Assembly (NCBI GenBank): GCA_037447605.1
Contig: CM074804.1
Span: forward strand, 7,355,909-7,419,908
Direction: 5' to 3'
DNA length: 64,000 bases
Origin: Zygnema circumcarinatum SAG 698-1b
Taxonomy: Eukaryota; Plantae; Zygnematophyceae
Position numbers and translations under genes: made by a program. Under the pieces are notes generated by a model, which saw only the letters and a list, made by a program, of their open reading frames with translations, was not told the origin of the DNA and made no database searches. This document shows, in pieces, positions 23,187-64,000 of the stretch; the stretch's first letter is position 1, and the number at the start of each line of letters is the position of its first letter.

Positions 23187-23277
23187 ATAGCCAATAATAT
23201 GTATGTAATAATATGTAATATATGTATATGTATGTATGTAGCCAATATGTATGTATGTATGTAGCCTTAGCCTTATG

Positions 23278-25809
<2,532 letters not shown>

Positions 25810-26717
25810 CAGAGAGGGAGAGCTAGAACAGGAGGCAAGGGCCTCTTGCTACACCATCTGCCATGAGAATATTTTCGTCAATGACACTTTATGATCCCTT
25901 TTGACGATTCAATCAGTCTTCCTATTGAGATCTCCCATGGCTTATCTTGGAGCCTTTTCTCCAGCTTAACTATGTTCATGAAGTTTTTTCCTTCTCACGA
26001 AATATTCAATTTTTAGCTTGTCTCTTGGAGAGTCTAACAAGGCATCCAGAAGCCTATCCTCAAAAAAAAGGATGGTAAAATAATCACGGGTTCAGAACTC
26101 AATGAGACAAGGTTGGAAGATGGATATTTTGTGAGACGGAAAAAATTACATATACATGTCCAAGTTGGAGAAAAAAACTCCAAGATAAAACATGGGAGAT
26201 CTCGATCGAAAGATGATTGAATCGTAAAAAAGGATTTATACAAAGTATTTCACAAAAATGTTCTCATAAAGTATAGATTTTACGTGTCACATAACTCGAA
26301 CGGTATAAACCATTCCTTTACAAGGATAGGAACAGAAAAATGAGGATAATCAGGGAGAATGACATATGAAGAAAAAAAATATGCATTCACTTCATAACAA
26401 AATTTCATAATGGAAGAAAAGTCTAGATAACACAAAACTGAAATCAGAAAACTCTCGTGTTTGCCTGATCACTCAAATTGTGTTTTTTTGCCCATAGATT
26501 GCACCATCTCTCTTCACACTTTGCAGCTTTGTTCAATCGTGTCGTAAGTTCAGGAATCACAGACACTAATAGCCTTAAATCCATGCGTGCATTCTTACCC
26601 TAACTCAAACTGAATGCATACTCGCCCTTCATGCCCGACGCTGCGGCTCAAAAGTCGGCTCGCTCCCTTCTCCCCCTTCTGAGCTCAGAGAGTAAGATGG
26701 AGAGGGCCCTCAGAGGC

Positions 26718-42252: not shown

Positions 42253-44945
42253 ATGTTCGCAATCCGAGCACTGGCTAGCTCGCGCTTGTGTTCCCTTCCC
42301 TGCTTGAACAGCTTGGCCAGACCGTCTGAACGGTTTCTGAAGCAAAAAAGCAACGCTGAAGTAGCTTCCAGCTACCCTACGCTCTTGCACAGGTGTGATA
42401 ATGATAAATATGTTGTGTGAGGGAAGCCGCGCAAGCTTGAAGAATTAGGCGAGCATGTTTTAGACGTCTGGTGTGTCGCAAGTCTGCAATTTTGCGTGGA
42501 GTATTCCGTCTTAAGGCATTCTCTCCATGCTTTCTTCCTTGATGTTCATGGTGTCTGAGTAGATGAGCAGTGGTCACCGTGAAGACAAACTGTACCTCCC
42601 TTTGCTTGAATGAAATGAAGGAGAGAATATCTGCGTCAAAAGAATGACTTTTACAGCATGTCTTTTGGGTTTGATGCTGCATTGGCTGGATGGAGTATTG
42701 GATTAGAGTTCGTAGTAAAAAAGGCCATTGCAGACCAATGAACGGCTTACTGAGGATTTTTCAAAGCTTGAAGCTAAGGAAATGAAAAGTATAAAAAGGC
42801 GTTGATGGCAAGACGGATGGCCTAATGTACGAACAAATGAGCGCATTTTTATCACTCAGGAAATTGGAGGGGACAAACAACAGCGGACTGACGTGGATAT
42901 CCTCTGCTCACTTTATGTTGGTCTACAACATTTGATCGATCAAATACGTTATCATAAAGTTGAAGTTGGAGTGAATTCGCGTGCATTGTTGTGAGATGTA
43001 CAGCGGGGTTTGGTGGAGTTCAGGTTGATCTCGGAGAAATCCACTAAAGCAATGGCTGATCCTGAAGGCAGCACAGCTAACCTGGAGCCTTCACAACGAT
43101 CTCCAATGGATACGCTTTTCAACCAAAAAAAGGTTCTTCGAACACTCGTGAGGCAGAAGCTTCGCCAGCTTCCATCGGAGCAGCGAGCAGTTGAAGGTCA
43201 GCATCTGACTTACGCCAACAAACTTAATATGCATAGAGTTTGACATTTTATGTGCGGAGCAATGGGACCCTATGTATATGCAGATCCTGCTTCTTGTTGT
43301 CCAGCATATCTCGGCAGATATGGTTAGTTTACAAGATATCGATAGTTCAATGGTTATGTCGGACTAAAGCACTATGCTTGATCTATAAATCATTGTGTCA
43401 TTCGGATCTTTTTTTTGGTTCTATGTGATGATGTTACTCCAAGCAGATTAATCATTGTGGGCAATGTCAGTCACCTTGCAGATGATGCAGTGCAGCAGCA
43501 CATCCTGGCAGCAGATTGGTTTCAGAAGAGTCAGAGAATATGTGCCTACATCAGCTGCGCTTCCCTTCGAGAGGTAGCCACCGACACACTTCTTGCTCGC
43601 ATCTTGGAATCACACAACAAGTCGCTCTATGTGCCACGTGTCCAAGACAAACAGAGCCACATGTGCATGCTCCGAATCCGCAACACAACGGAAGATGTCG
43701 CAGCCAACAGCATGGGCATCATGGAGCCCACACCCATCCTGCCAGATGGGACCCCCCGCGATGATTGTAAGTATAAGAAGCCTCCTTTTCTCGAATGCTT
43801 TTCTCTTTTTTGTGGAGGGAGGGTCTCAGAATCCTTGGGATATGTGGCTACATGTCACAGTTATCGACAGTGGAGCACTAAACTGGATTGTCCAGTTTCG
43901 GAATAGGCATATCTGAGAATGTGGATTTTGCGGGTGTCTGGGTGCAGTGCTGTCTGCAGAGGAGCCTTTGGATCTATTGCTTCTTCCTGGTATCCCACAA
44001 AATCTCTCCTTTCTTTTTGTCTCACATACCTGCACGTTTGTTCCCAAATCACGGGCCACTAAGTGGAACCCAACATGTACAAGTCCAAACTCGAGAGGTC
44101 GACGTTGACCTCTCGAGTTGGCACATGTTAAGTTCCACATGTCAGTTTTTTCAGGGTTGTGATTGATCCACTCAAGCCGCATGATCTCCACTGCAGCCAT
44201 GCATTCTTAACATCATCGATCTGCTGCAATTTGCAGGACTTGCATTCGACCGCCTCGGTGGTCGTCTTGGTCGTGGAGGAGGGTGAGGCTTTCCAACCAT
44301 GGGCAGTGAAAAGGTTAGGGTCAGTGTTAGGGTTAGGGTCAGGGTCAGGGTTAGGGTTAAAATAGCTGAACGTGGTGTCTTTATGGAGCTTCTGTATGTT
44401 GAAGTTTTCAAGGACTTCGAGTTGCCTTGCTGTACTGCTCAACTCAGCACTTTGTAGTGAACATCGGTTCATTGTCAACTCGTGGTTTTCATTGATGTCG
44501 AAATTCGTGTTCGAACTTTATTCCATGAGATAGCCCTACACTTACCAAGATTGTCGCTGTCCTTTTCTGCTGGGTCAGATACTACGACCTGTTCATTCAG
44601 ACGTACTTGGAGCGAGCCAAAAGTAAAGGATGGCGCAGGCCCCTGCTAGGTACTTCTACCGAGCAGATGTTCCCTGCCATTTATTGTTGTCCCACGCTTG
44701 ATAGTTTTATCAGAATACCAAATAACGAGAGAAATTTCATCCACATGAGCTTTGACCCGTCTCCCTGCCTCCAACTTTCCTTGTTTCTTTCTTTGTTGAC
44801 AGTGGCCCTCTCCTACAAGATACAGATACAAGAGGAGGCCATCCCCATGGACCAAACGGATGTGCGGGTGGATGCCGTGATGTCAGCAGACGGCCTGCTC
44901 ACGTTTGCACGCAAAGAGGAGCCAGTCCTTGGACCCAGCCTTTAA
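42253..44945 (+). CDS. MTHFS: 5-formyltetrahydrofolate cyclo-ligase, probably with a mitochondrial presequence, multi-exon
   Basis: QKKVLRTLVRQKL; ICAYISCASLREVAT; LYVPRVQDK; NSMGIMEP; DLLLLPG|LAFDRLGGRLGRGGG|YYD; VALSYKIQI...IPMDQTDVRVDAV. The putative exon 1 MFAIRALASSRLCSL... joins in phase to LISEKSTKAMAD. Confidence 0.9.
44315..44359 (+). repeat. Telomere-like hexamer tract T(T/C)AGGG in a 5-FCL intron
   Basis: TTAGGG TCAGTG TTAGGG TTAGGG TCAGGG TCAGGG TTAGGG TTA. Confidence 0.8.
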
Positions 44946-51144: not shown

Positions 51145-54100
51145 TCAGAACGGTTTTGCCACAGGTTCTCCACGCCGGACCGGGGGGGGGGCTTCCTCAT
51201 CGCTGTCATCCAGCCTCTTCCGCGGCAAGGCGAGCATCTTCAGTCCCTTGAATATGAGAGCCACTTCAACATCTCCATCATCCTCAACAATCCCCCCAAC
51301 GGACCCAATGGACTCGGACAACGAGGGGTCGTTCGAACCTCTCCGGACGCCACTCCGGGGAGGGCGAGGCACATCAGGAGCACTCCATGAAGTCGAACGA
51401 GTTTTTGACGGCGCTTGCTCTTTCTGCAGCTTAGTAATAGGGTCATCTGCAGGAGAAGAGTTTGGGGGAGCCCACCCAGGCAAGCGTCTCCTTGTCGGCC
51501 GTGAGTCGACCTCAGATTTGTTCTTGTCAGGGGAGCCTCCGGGGTCCTCCATTCTGAGGCTCGAACTTGAGCTCTTTCTTGAGAGGCTAAAGGTGAGGGG
51601 TCCGGAGAAAAAGGACCCCGGCCTTGTCCGTTTGTCAGGGCTCTCTTCACTCACCCTGTCACTTGAATCAGGCCCTCGGTCCATCTTCCCAACCTTCAAA
51701 ATGCCGCCTCCTTGCTGGCTACCACTTCCAGGAAGAATGGAAGATGGAGGGCTTGAAGCGGGGCGGGAAGGACTATGCAAGGGCCTATCTTCACCCTCAT
51801 TATCGGCAACGGGTGCCCTTATTGAAAACTTGGGGAGAATTCCTGTGAGGTGACGAGTTGCAGTTGGGCCCTGCACTTCTTTCATACTGACACCAGGTAG
51901 TTCTGATGGTGCTGGGTTACTATGGTAGAATTGATAGGCAGAGCGGATGAGTGTGCGTGGGATGTGAGTCTCCAGAACGCTGCGAGGAAGGTAGTCGGAC
52001 AGCTGGCAGAGCTCGTCCAGGAAGATAATTTGAGAGAAGAGGGAGGCTCTGCACGAACAGCACTCATCCCCGCACACAACTACAGTATAAGTAAGAAAAT
52101 CAAACAGTTCAGTGACATGTCAATCTAAAGTTAAGAACCCCATACATAGAGCCCATGGAAACCCACCATGGAAAAGGCCCAAAACCGTCTGCCCGTATGC
52201 AAAACTTGAAAAAAACAAAAATAACACCTACCTAGATTTCCTCAACTCTGTCCGTACCTGTTGCTGGTCTCCCAGTCTGTCAGCGCTATAGCTGCAGCAC
52301 ACTGCACCAATATCTGCATTCTCCGCTGTATGGCATCCTCCGCGGGGGCGCTGCTCCCGAGCTCGTCGTCCTCGTACCCTCCGCTCGGGGTCCTCCGCAG
52401 CGCCCTCTGCTGGGCGAGAAGCTCACGCTTCAACTCCCGCCGCTCTACTCCTGCACTCTCTGAACCCTCCACCAGAGAATGCATGCACCTGCAGGGGGGC
52501 TAACATGTAGCTTCAGCACAGATCACTCACTCTTCCTCTTTTCCCCCCCGCCCCTTCCCCCTCCCCACCCAGACAGCATGCAAAGTGGGTATCGAAGAAG
52601 GTCCAAGAAACGCGATAGCTGCAGCATGTTCAAAGGATGGAGAGTGTGGGTGACGAAGGGAAGGAGTGCTTCAAGTTCAGAGCGTACCTGGCAAGGCAGT
52701 TTACATTGTTGCTAAACCCACCGGTAGAGCGATTGAAGGCTGCTCCTTGCCACACCTCCGACTTCATGAATGCAGCAAAGAGGTACGGCAGCAGTGCCCA
52801 TGTGGAGTCCCCAACCCCCCCTATGTCCAGCAGCATTGCCAGCACATCCGGCGTAGTAACCTCTGCTCTCCGCATGGCTCCCACTCTGCCTGCAACTCGT
52901 CGAACTTGGGCCACATATCCATTTTCTGGGGCTCCCCGAGGGACATACATAGCCATGGATTGCAGAGTGGTGAAGATGAGAGGTGTGCTCGCTTGTAGGA
53001 CATGGGAAGAGGCAGTTGCCAGCAGATGTAGGAGGTGCAGAGTGTGGCCAACTTGGATGCAGATAGCTACTGCAAGTTCTAGGTTTGATATGTCTCTCAG
53101 GCAGGACCGCCTTCGCTTCTCCTGATGCATGTTTGCTGCAAGTGCTATTAACGTGGCTTTATTTGCACGCAAAATCTCCTCGAACCGGTTGAGCAAAGCC
53201 ATTAATATTTCTCTCGCTTCTCCGGCAAATCTGTCCACTCCATATGGGCCAAAACATCGTACATAGGCCTCTAATTCCGGCACACTCACAGTAAGTTTTC
53301 CTGCTCCTCCAACAGGCACTGCAGTGCTGTGAAAAGCCTTCTCAAAGGGTGAATACAAAATCCCCAAGTTCTTAGCGTCACATACCACAGTATGCATGAA
53401 CGTAGCGGCAATTATTCGCATGACTGGGGTGGAGTTTGCCATCTCTACTTCCGTCTGGTGAAGGTCTCGCATGCGGCCGCTGTACGCCTCCAAGAGGAGA
53501 GTCTCCCTGAAAGTGTGAGAGAGGTCCGCAGTACAATGCTGCTCTATCACATGGATGAGGGCAGCATATTGCCTGATGCCCAGCTCAAACGTAGAGGGAG
53601 AAGTGAGCTCTCCATTGGGCTGGATGGCACTCCGGATACGTTTCTTTATGTTGCTTGCCAGTCTCTCCCTCAAATACTGCAACACAGTTGGAGCAGTCCG
53701 TTTCTTAATGTAATGCAACTCCGATCCAACCCTACTTGAACAATCAAGGGGGCCCAATAAAGCATGGGAATGTATTCACAACGATAATGCCATTCCTTTG
53801 CATGTATTCTCTCACCTCTCGGGGGACGAAGACGGTCCCGGCAATGTTCATAGGCTCCATATCATTCAGCGCTGAAACCAATCCGGTCAGCCTGTACAGA
53901 GCTGCCTCCAATCTGCCCCAACACACAGCTACCTTCACACTCTCAACATATCCTCTATAGCCAGATAACGTTAAGTACCACACACCCAGGTTCCCGCAAG
54001 TGTTCGGAAAGCATAAGATAATTGCGAGAAATCAGGGCACGACACATTGGTCTACTCGGCCACCTGCAAATGCTTCCAGTAATCAACCTTTCTCTCAAAG

Positions 54101-60100: not shown

Positions 60101-61640
60101 GTACAAGAGGACTGTTGCTTATTTCAAGTAATAGTTTCAATGCCAGCCTCTTGAAGGCAAGAAGGTCAACCAGCACCTGAAGCCCTCCCGAATGTTCAAG
60201 CATCCACTTGCATTAATTGGCTGTCCCAATAACCTCCAAAAGTGTTTGACCAACAACATGGAGTAAAGAACAAAAGGTACAAGAATTTAGGGCATTGAAT
60301 ATGAGTGGTAAAGCAACATTTTCGCGCTCACTCATTGTGCCAAGAATGAGACTGAAAATAACTCGAAAAAGGCGTTGCATGGTACAAGGCAAAGACGTTT
60401 GCAAAATTCATTAGTCTACTGGATTTTCACATCTTCATTGCCATAATGAACAGGCATAGTCTTGACATGCTACTGTCTATCAAATCCAACTACACGGTTT
60501 GCACTTAACTGGCGCTCACTTCAGCGTGACATGACCTGAATGTACCTTCGCTACAGATGCTCTATGATGGTATTTCATGAAATTTGTGAAATTTAAAAAG
60601 GGAACCGGTCATTTCATTACCATGTACCACGGTTCCAGGGCCCGAAGGTACTTTTCAGCCAAGCCTCGCACCAGTTCGTATCCAGCCTTGTCGACCTGCA
60701 TGCGTAGCTACGAATGGGTCACGAATGAAATCAAACTATAAGTGGTAATTAAAAAGGTTTTTCAGCTCACCAGCTTTCAAGGCAACTACCGTGCTTTAAA
60801 TTTAAACAATACCTTTACTCCAGACGAGTTAGATGCGTGCATCAAAAGAACAGTGTTTTGGAACGGCGGTGTCATTTGTGACAATGCCAACGAAATCTGA
60901 TGAGATCAAGACGTCTTGCACCTTTAAATGGTGAAGGATAAGCAAATGGCAGCATTGGCGGTCGACTCATTTTCACCAAACAAAGTAAGTTGATCTCCAT
61001 AATCCAACGTCATCCATATTAGCACGATTAACACAAAGCGATGGACAATTCGATATCACGGCTGCGAAGTGTAAGCGAAAGAGGCACTAAATGTGCCTCT
61101 CTCAAGTACCTAGACATTTTTCCCGCTCGGCTCATGTCAGCTCAAGCCTTGTTATCTTATAATAAATCATAGTCAGCACCTTTTCGTCAGTAGATAACGC
61201 TGCTCGCTACAAGTTACCTTTTCCAACGGTAGTCTACGTGGGTGCTCCGGGAAATTCTTGGCCAAATACATGCACAGCTTCGGAACAGCTGGGAAAATGC
61301 CGACTTTCCACATGGTGTCAGTAACTTTGGGAGCTCCATTTGACAAATCAAGAGTCCGCCGTAGCAAGTAGAGCTTAGTCATGAGGCCTTCTGCAGCATT
61401 AATTAGATGAGGAATTCTCTCTGCCTTTTCCATCTTTGGCTGGCTCCTTCCATTCGTCAGCTGCTTAAACAAAACTTGGGGAGGGGATGACTGTTTTGGC
61501 CAACCAGACTGACGAGACTCTTTTTCTGAAACGACTCCGGCGCTTACTCTACCCGCTGACCCTCTGCTCCATCTGCTTGCTCCCTTCTCATGCCCTCCCT
61601 CCCTCCCTCTCTCCCTACTGAAGGCCTGCACATCCTCCAT
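51145..61640 (-). CDS. NAP1: NCK-associated protein 1 (NAP1/NAPP, SCAR/WAVE complex), many exons
   Basis: AEGLMTKLYLLRRTL...WKVGIFPAVPKLCMYLAKNFPEHPRRLPLEK; LVKYLSVYDPPLDGVQMDL; ALCFYRH; LLLEAYSG; CFGPYGVDR; WALLPYLFAAFMKSEVW...FSNNVNCLAR; FLDELCQLSDYLPRSVLETHIP. The start ATG is tentative. Confidence 0.92.
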
Positions 61641-62500
61641 CCCCTCCCTCCCTCTCCAGCGCCAGGCCGAGCCTGCAGCAAGCTGGGGCCCTGCCTGGTA
61701 CAACCACTCCCCTCCAAACTTGAAGGTCAAGGCCCAAATTTTAGGGTTACCGTACAGCTCTGTGCAAGGCCGATTTGCAGGGTTCGTCAAATAGGGGAGA
61801 TCCCCTAAATATCGTAAATAGCTTATTTATGTAAGATTTTGAGATTAGTTTACGTGATTTCAACTTAAATACCACACAAGCCCCAAAAAGCATTTTTTTG
61901 GTTAAAAACAAAAAGGAAATGAATTGCATTTGCAACCACGATAGCAATGATGTATATGAACTTTACTTGTTGGTATAACAATACGGCTTTAGAAACTGGT
62001 GCAACCTCTTCAACTCTTATAGATTGGTAAATTTTACCAATCAATTAGAACAACTGTGCATTTGGCAATCACAACATATAGTTGCTTATTCAAAAACCCA
62101 ATTGCTCGAAAACTTTGTAGATCCAATCCTAAGCTCTCTATTTCCTTTTCCATCCATCATTAATTACTCCAAGTATCACTTTAGAATCCATCATAGTCTT
62201 GAAATTTCCTCACAAAAACTCTATTCCAAATCATAACCTCTGAAATTCTAGGTGTAGTCACAAAAGAAAAACTGAAATAGAAACTAAAATTAGAAATGAA
62301 ATGAAAAATGGTCCCACTCCCTTAGGAGTTTTAGGCTGAACAAGACAGCTATAGAAGTGATGCAAACTACTCAAAGAGACCCTCGAAGAGCGGTCAAACT
62401 ATCAAACTGTTTGCAGTGAAGAATTCCTTCCAATGAAAAGTCTGTCAACCTCTTTCGAAACTCGTCTTTCTCCCAAACAATTCCTGCCTTCCTATATTCC

Positions 62501-62740
62501 TGTCTCGTCCGTACGCGTACGGTTTCGTCCGTACAGTCCATATTTACGTGTTTTTACAAAACCAATTTAGGGGACAGTCCCCTATCTTAAGCCGAAATCC
62601 CCAATTTGACGAACCCTGCCGATTTGACGATTCCGTACAAGAAATAGAGACAGAAAATACAGTATGTACGGTCAACGGAACGGACATTACAGTACAGTAA
62701 CATATCCGTACGGTACGAATATATTCATTCTGCGAATTTT
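62501..62740. mobile_element. Possible DNA-transposon end: palindromes and repeated CCGTAC subterminal motifs
   Basis: Begins TGTCTCG. Perfect palindrome CCGTACGCGTACGG at 62509-62522; hairpin TAGGGGAC-A-GTCCCCTA at 62568-62584; about six CCGTAC/GTACGG copies. The partner end is not in the window. Confidence 0.35.
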
Positions 62741-62741
62741 C

Positions 62742-64000
62742 CACAATTCGGACCAGTGGATCGGCAACCATTGGACAACCATTGGATGGCAATGGTTGGA
62801 CGTCTACTGGTTGGCAATCAGTCGACTGGTTGCCAACCAGTGGATGCCACTGGTTGGCAACCAGTCGAATGGTTGCACAGATCGGACCATTAGACAAACC
62901 AGTCGACTGGTTGGCAACCAGTCGAATGGTTTCCAACCAGTGGCATCCACTGGTTCCAAACCAGTCGAATGGTTGTTTCAATCCTGCGCCACTGGTTCGC
63001 AACCAGTCGAATGGTTGTTTCGATCCGGCGGCACTGGTTGCCAACCATTCGACTGGTTGCCAACCAGTGGCATCCACTGGTTCCAAACCAGTCGAATGGT
63101 TGCCAACCAGTGGCATCCACTGGTTCCAAACCAGTCGAATGGTTGCCAACCAGTGGCATCCACTGGTTCCAAACCAGTCGAATGGTTGCACAGATCGGAC
63201 CATTAGACAAACCAGTCGACTGGTTGGCAACCAGTCGAATGGTTGCCAACCATTCGACTGGTTGCCAACCATTGGATCACTGGTTCCGAACCAGTCGAAT
63301 GGTTGCACAGATCGGACCATTAGACAAACCAGTCGACTGGTTGGCAACCAGTCGAATGGTTGCACAGATCGGACCATTAGACAAACCAGTCGACTGGTTG
63401 CCAACCATTGGATCACTGGTTCGAACCAGTCGAATGGTTATATCCATTAAATCAAATGGTTGGCAACCATTCGACTGGTTGCCAACCAGTGGCATCCACT
63501 GGTTGGCAACCATTCGACTGGTTGCCAACCATTCGACTGGTTGCCAACCATTCGACTGGTTGCCAACCAGTCGACTGGTTGGCAACCATTCGACTGGTTG
63601 CCAACCAGTGGATGCCACTGGTTGGCAACCAGTCGAATGGTTGCACAGATCGGACCATTAGACAAACCAGTCGACTGGTTGGCAACCAGTGGTTGCGGAC
63701 CGAAACAACCATTCGACAGGTTACCAACCACTGGATGCCACTGGTTGGCAACCATTCGACTGGTTTGGAACCAGTGGATGCCAGTGGTTGGCAACTGATT
63801 GCCAACCAGTAGACGTCCAACCATTGCCATCCAATGGTTGTCCAATGGTTGCCGATCCACTGGTCCGAACTGTGAATGGTTGTTTCGGTCTGCAACCACT
63901 GGTTGGCAACCAGTCGAATGGTTGTTTCGATCTGGCGGCACTGGTTGGCAACCAGTCGAATGGTTATATCCATTAAATCAAATGGTTGGCAACCATTAAA
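62742..64000. repeat. Modular nested-palindrome satellite (19/24-bp monomers, 43- and 57-bp higher-order blocks) that runs off the window
   Basis: TGGTT-nnn-AACCA alternates with cores GTCGAC, GTCGAA/TTCGAC and GTGGCATCCAC/GTGGATGCCAC. A 43-bp unit occurs x3 from 63063. The GCACAGATCGGACCATTAGACA module occurs in blocks starting at 62870, 63183, 63300, 63357 and 63638. Confidence 0.95.

Follow-up and report, generated by a model that had tools for sequence, protein, structure and literature searches.

The right end of the 64,000-nucleotide stretch of Zygnema circumcarinatum SAG 698-1b DNA analysed in this work (hereafter the window) carries, at positions 62742-63874, what is probably a 1133-bp member of a non-autonomous DNA transposon family of foldback type (FB/MITE-like) with a high copy number. 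The element is of a known kind, the family is apparently undescribed, and its unusual point is that the subrepeats are themselves palindromes. The anatomy of the element, its dispersal, the ends that the copies share, their variation in size and the lack of a recognisable coding domain were observed directly. A sequence-only reading of the window had proposed, among other possibilities, an undescribed foldback-type element; this suggestion is supported by an 81-nt inverted repeat, by a core orientation that depends on the arm, and by copies that are dispersed, have common ends and differ in their interior.

The array is built from the 5-bp half-sites AACCA and TGGTT. The region 62742-64000 includes 99 of them (47 AACCA and 52 TGGTT), against 2.4 in shuffled sequences; they cover 495 of the 1259 bases (39%), and their density is 39-42 in the last kilobase versus 0-4 per kilobase in the rest of the window. 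The 16-mer AACCAGTCGAATGGTT, searched with up to two mismatches, gives 59 matches, all of them within 62816-63965 (0.05 expected). The half-sites form two types of dyad, the 16-bp AACCA-N6-TGGTT and the 13-bp TGGTT-N3-AACCA, and Tandem Repeats Finder identified periods of 19, 43, 117 and 127 bp. The same region holds the 6-bp cores GTCGAA (14), TTCGAC (8) and GTCGAC (6), the 11-bp cores GTGGCATCCAC (five copies) and GTGGATGCCAC (two copies) along with two one-base variants, and the 3-bp spacers GCC (13), GGC (13), CCA (4) and TGG (1). Three longer modules are also present: one of 22 bp, with five copies in a single orientation throughout, including the copy in the right arm; ATATCCATTAAATCAAA, with two copies in the array; and GTTTCGATC(C/T)GGCGGCAC, with two copies plus a diverged one. 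The palindrome array previously described for this region is confirmed by the excess of half-sites, and every core and module that had been listed was found at the counts given. In contrast, the statement that the half-sites alternate strictly in orientation was too strong, given that alternation holds for 86 of the 98 neighbouring pairs; the 12 remaining pairs are found within the terminal domains or next to the 17-18-bp modules.

The frame of the element, which was absent from the sequence-only reading, is an outer inverted repeat formed by 62742-62822 and 63794-63874, which are 99% complementary over 81 nt with a single mismatch at 62746, and which delimit the 1133-bp unit. The following features were recognised:

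62742-62822, plus strand: left terminal flanking domain, part of the outer inverted repeat; it starts with CACAATTCGGACCAGTGGATCGG, carries the 11-bp direct repeat CAACCATTGGA twice, and includes the first half-sites.
62823-63439, plus strand: left arm, formed by 16-bp and 13-bp dyads that repeat at higher-order periods of 19, 43 and 117 bp; its asymmetric cores are mostly in the plus orientation (GTCGAA, GTGGCATCCAC).
63440-63456, plus strand: middle module ATATCCATTAAATCAAA, 17 bp, A/T-rich and non-palindromic, the point at which core orientation switches.
63457-63793, plus strand: right arm, formed by the units of the left arm, mostly in the minus orientation (TTCGAC, GTGGATGCCAC).
63794-63874, minus strand: right terminal flanking domain, equal to 62742-62822 in inverted form and ending with CCACTGGTCCGAACTGTG.
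63875-64000, plus strand: start of a second array with units in the plus orientation and a second 17-bp middle module at 63966-63982; it continues beyond the window.

This layout, with a flanking domain at each end, two subrepeat arms and a short middle between them, is the anatomy of a foldback transposon, for which a scheme with a flanking domain, an outer tandem-repeat domain, an inner domain and a small middle has been reported (PMC4079207). The arms differ in length (approximately 617 bp for the left versus 337 bp for the right), and the predicted fold of the 1133-bp unit as single-stranded DNA has an energy of -530 kcal/mol and is closed by the 81-bp stem. When the element was aligned with its own reverse complement the score was 593, versus 455 +/- 19 for unit-shuffled versions; this excess comes largely from the 81-nt ends, and therefore the interior is only loosely mirror-symmetric. 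The right arm contains a near-perfect local palindrome of 182 bp (63463-63644, centred on 63553/63554), formed by the inverted pair 63463-63553 and 63554-63644 (95%), and it also holds one direct copy of the block carrying the 22-bp module (63627-63680). Another inverted pair joins 63056-63145 with 63706-63795 (93%).

The orientation of the asymmetric cores is related to the arm in which they lie: to the left of the middle module 15 are in the plus and 3 in the minus orientation, and to the right 2 are in the plus and 10 in the minus orientation (Fisher p = 0.0005). Higher-order blocks of 43-90 nt recur whole and inverted across the two sides, at 93%. The earlier observation that the cores occur in both orientations is correct for the asymmetric cores, but it mostly reflects the two arms of a foldback element. 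For both GTCGAA/TTCGAC and GCC/GGC, a palindromic or mirror form lies only one substitution away; a genuine inversion is required solely by the CAT/ATG centre of the 11-bp core, 3 nt that are inverted between GTGGCATCCAC and GTGGATGCCAC. Asymmetric cores in both orientations between inverted half-sites, together with this 3-nt inversion, would be expected of a site-specific invertible cassette, in which a recombinase flips the cores between inverted arms and their order varies within a clone. We consider such a cassette extremely improbable, since core orientation follows the arms, whole blocks of 43-90 nt are inverted together, and the ten window ORFs tested carry no recombinase domain; the sequencing runs described below also argue against it.

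The dispersal of the array was analysed by aligning contigs from four DNA runs, which belong to three studies of one organism, on 60501-64000. These runs had come from a first search with a query of 1701 bases, consisting of the array and approximately 440 bases of flank, in which they contained 37-54% of the sampled words. Across the runs the word depth is 24-55 for the unique flank on the NAP1 side and approximately 700-65,000 for the array bins, most of them with 1,250-65,000; these sums over bins differ from a true copy number, and the array words occur hundreds of times in the genome. The copies have common ends. On the right side, 8-13 contigs per run stop matching at 63874 in the four runs, and in three of them another 8-10 do so at 63876; beyond this end they continue for approximately 180-255 nt into sequences that are unlike each other (agreement about 0.47). 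On the left side, other contigs begin to align at 62740-62757 and are preceded by unrelated sequence. Dispersed copies with shared ends, which the sequence-only reading had named as the thing to look for, are accordingly seen in the contigs of all four runs.

The interior of the family is variable. In some contigs 62796-62802 is joined to 63814-63819 with 13-29 foreign letters in between, at approximately single-copy depth; these are hairpin members of about 130 bp built from the family ends alone. The ends that are common across the family span approximately 55 nt, versus the 81 nt of the copy in the window. Other joints skip 147-1021 nt of the interior or connect opposite strands, also at single-copy depth, from which it follows that other loci carry other module orders. 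The depth of these alternative joints is the full single-copy one, which fits other genomic copies better than sub-stoichiometric flips of this locus, although contigs drop rare variants and flips at low frequency may escape notice; moreover, hundreds of copies are unlike a dedicated switch. The description of the array as invertible-cassette-like is not supported, in view of an orientation that follows the arms, the lack of a recombinase in the tested ORFs, and the depth of the joints.

The contigs also bear on whether the array could be a misassembly or a long-read foldback artefact. No short-read contig spans it, so the order of the units as assembled has no independent confirmation, and palindromes are error-prone in assembly. 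Nonetheless, an artefact has a very small probability, since the sampled words are present at 37-54% in the four DNA runs and both terminal domains, as well as many of the internal junctions, are found in run contigs. Exact-pattern scans gave no match to a 24-mer of the array unit or to a 25-mer of the terminal domain in a metagenome contig collection, nor to the 25-mer in a genome contig collection; both collections evidently lack this organism. Of the sampled array words, 26-35% are present in transcriptome-like runs, whose contigs amount to 33-46 million letters, and 15% in a run marked "RNA?"; some members of the family may be transcribed.

The shared ends also weigh on a different explanation, namely a non-mobile palindromic minisatellite or satellite, perhaps derived from a transposon, that spread by segmental duplication and unequal exchange instead of transposition. 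Several features are consistent with it: the array has a clear tandem higher-order structure, the copy in the window lacks a target-site duplication, two arrays lie back to back, and satellites are known to originate from foldback elements (PMC4079207). However, the sharp end at 63874, shared by copies that continue into many unlike flanks, and the presence of ends-only members of approximately 130 bp in single-copy contexts fit discrete insertions, and we regard the satellite as unlikely.

Regarding the boundaries of the putative foldback element, the second array adjoins its right end directly, from 63875 onward, and this array aligns best, locally and in direct orientation, with the inner part of the first element. 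The ATATCCATTAAATCAAA copy at 63966-63982 lies in a context that matches that of the copy at 63440-63456, and no left terminal flanking domain was found for the second array from 63875 onward; this array is likely a left-truncated or rearranged member of the same family. Around 62742 and 63874 of this particular copy no target-site duplication was observed (left flank GAATTTTC, right flank AATGGTTG); this absence does not decide the matter, since the second array begins right at the end of the element. Many other copies in the read contigs run past 63874 with an A-rich motif of the AAAyTT type (CAAAsTT or AAAAAyTTGG), in the region corresponding to 63874-63886, that resembles the reverse complement of the left flank in the window, GAAAATTCG (62730-62741). 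This stretch may represent 8-10 additional nucleotides of the inverted repeat, approximately, or else an A/T-rich target preference, and the exact terminus of the family is uncertain by a few bases. Elements of the hAT superfamily are recognised by an 8-bp target-site duplication and YARNG-type termini. The unit at 62742-63874 differs from a non-autonomous hAT element in both respects, given that its termini are of the form CACAA... and that it has no 8-bp duplication.

With respect to coding capacity, no Pfam family was detected in the array ORFs, and neither a transposase nor a recombinase domain was detected by Pfam among the ten window ORFs tested. For the 230-aa ORF of the array, 2734 candidates shared words in a homologue search and none of them scored; the long ORFs of the array are a by-product of the repeat itself. 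In the material analysed we saw no autonomous copy, transposase, excision or empty site. Comparison with microRNA precursors of Rfam gave MIR9471 as the best match, with 62.3 bits versus a threshold of 150, and lower scores for others, mir-552 among them; these matches are generic long-hairpin look-alikes. A scan for bacterial promoters and terminators reported the dyads as terminators, and is uninformative in a eukaryote.

Several known elements can be compared with this family. The Drosophila Foldback (FB) element has, like the copy in the window, arms of short tandem subrepeats, a variable size, a small non-coding middle and conserved outer ends. The units of the FB arms are plain direct repeats, whereas those described here are palindromes of 13 and 16 bp, and as a consequence the arms are self-complementary too; in addition, the array of this streptophyte, unlike the insect element, shows neither a visible target-site duplication nor a coding partner. 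Among plants, the Hairpin elements of Arabidopsis and SoFT of the Solanaceae are foldback/MITE families. As described, elements of this sort are non-autonomous, hairpin-forming and of approximately 0.1-1 kb, and lie in gene-rich DNA of the plant lineage, as does the one in the window; to our knowledge neither these two families nor FARE is built from nested dyads. FARE is a foldback family of Arabidopsis (PMC4079207).

In Drosophila virilis, the long foldback element Tetris and its miniature form DAIBAM, a MITE, share only the final part of the TIRs (PMC4079207), a relation that the short ends-only members match. Further similarities are that the tandem repeats inside Tetris have sequence in common with its flanking domain, that rearranged copies are numerous, and that a target-site duplication can be recognised in few copies. 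In contrast, its repeats are of approximately 220 bp versus 19-43 bp here, and its TIRs reach 1.7 kb; no array of satellite size was seen here. For Galileo, the target-site duplication is of 7 bp. This element of the P superfamily of Drosophila (PMC3573991) resembles the family in its long and internally repetitive inverted repeats and in the strong structural variation between its copies, but autonomous copies with a P-type transposase exist in Galileo. The tandem repeats in the TIRs of Galileo act as extra transposase binding sites (PMC4079207).

By analogy with Galileo and Tetris, the foldback family of the window would be mobilised by a trans-acting transposase encoded elsewhere in the genome, to which the dyads could serve as binding sites. 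The AACCA/TGGTT dyads, which are already present within the flanking domain, would function as secondary transposase binding sites and would have been multiplied inside the arms through unequal exchange or slippage; recombination, gene conversion or template switching could then mix their orientations and produce long palindromes locally. Every unit is self-complementary, and hence the units are able to pair in either orientation. Remodelling of the array through recombination or template switching, with units of either orientation as partners, is compatible with the data: core and spacer orientations occur in mixed combinations, for instance GCC-TTCGAC-GCC beside GGC-GTCGAA-GCC, and such combinations, like the opposite-strand joints of other copies, are compatible with a process that is blind to orientation. 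A more elaborate proposal is that the nested dyads are functional, i.e. that they bind a dimeric transposase or host factor, that inversions arising by hairpin priming or template switching shuffle the modules both ways, and that transcripts form perfect hairpins which enter small-RNA pathways close to genes like NAP1; we give this proposal a low probability.

The gene near the array was identified as NAP1 by a match to PF09735 at 52633-53757 on the minus strand (E = 2e-48), and an exon at approximately 61220-61436 aligns to residues 80-154 of Selaginella NAP1. The closest relative found for the ORF of this exon is from Mesotaenium (52% identity), and the land-plant NAP1 proteins show approximately 38%; a follow-up protein search after the Mesotaenium match did not return the NAP1 of this genome itself. 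The array starts upstream of NAP1, approximately 1.3 kb from the first Met in the aligned exon (approximately 61433); the earlier figure was about 1.1 kb to the NAP1 start. This location, together with the density of the dyads and their fixed spacings of 3 and 6 bp, could suggest that a dimeric host protein binds along the array, which would be, for instance, a cis-regulatory platform or origin kept upstream of NAP1 for its function. We find this quite improbable: the array words are present at hundreds of times the single-copy depth with unrelated flanks, the order of the units varies between copies, and nothing ties the array specifically to NAP1.

Should the foldback reading be correct, a foldback/MITE lineage with clean limits would be present in a streptophyte; the closest NAP1 relative found for this genome is that of Mesotaenium. 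A Zygnema genome paper described the genome as rich in MITEs and simple repeats, and reported its repeats only as bulk percentages of these two classes. Hundreds of cruciform-prone copies near genes would be candidate hotspots for rearrangement, and they could supply hairpin RNA as well as cause assembly gaps. The finding opens no long-standing question; the dyad motif provides a concrete handle toward the cognate transposase.

Other features of the window were also observed. Between the array and NAP1 lies a hAT-like non-autonomous element of 841 bp (61778-62618), located upstream of the NAP1 exon at approximately 345 bp from its first Met. The 15-bp ends of this element, CAGGGTTCGTCAAAT and ATTTGACGAACCCTG, are perfect, and its 8-bp target-site duplication, CCGATTTG, is exact, so that both hAT characteristics, the 8-bp duplication and YARNG-type termini, are present; in the four DNA runs its words reach hundreds of times the single-copy depth. 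CCGTAC/GTACGG motifs flank this element at 62500-62741 and 61750-61765 and are also found in its right subterminal part; they may correspond to a third, older repeat or to subterminal motifs. Far from the array, 23251-25866 is a 2.6-kb microsatellite of (TA)n followed by (TC)n that reads as ORFs of 820-871 aa, and the ORF at 43415-43903 on the plus strand matches the 5-formyltetrahydrofolate cyclo-ligase family (PF01812, E = 1.3e-09) and is probably an exon of a host gene.
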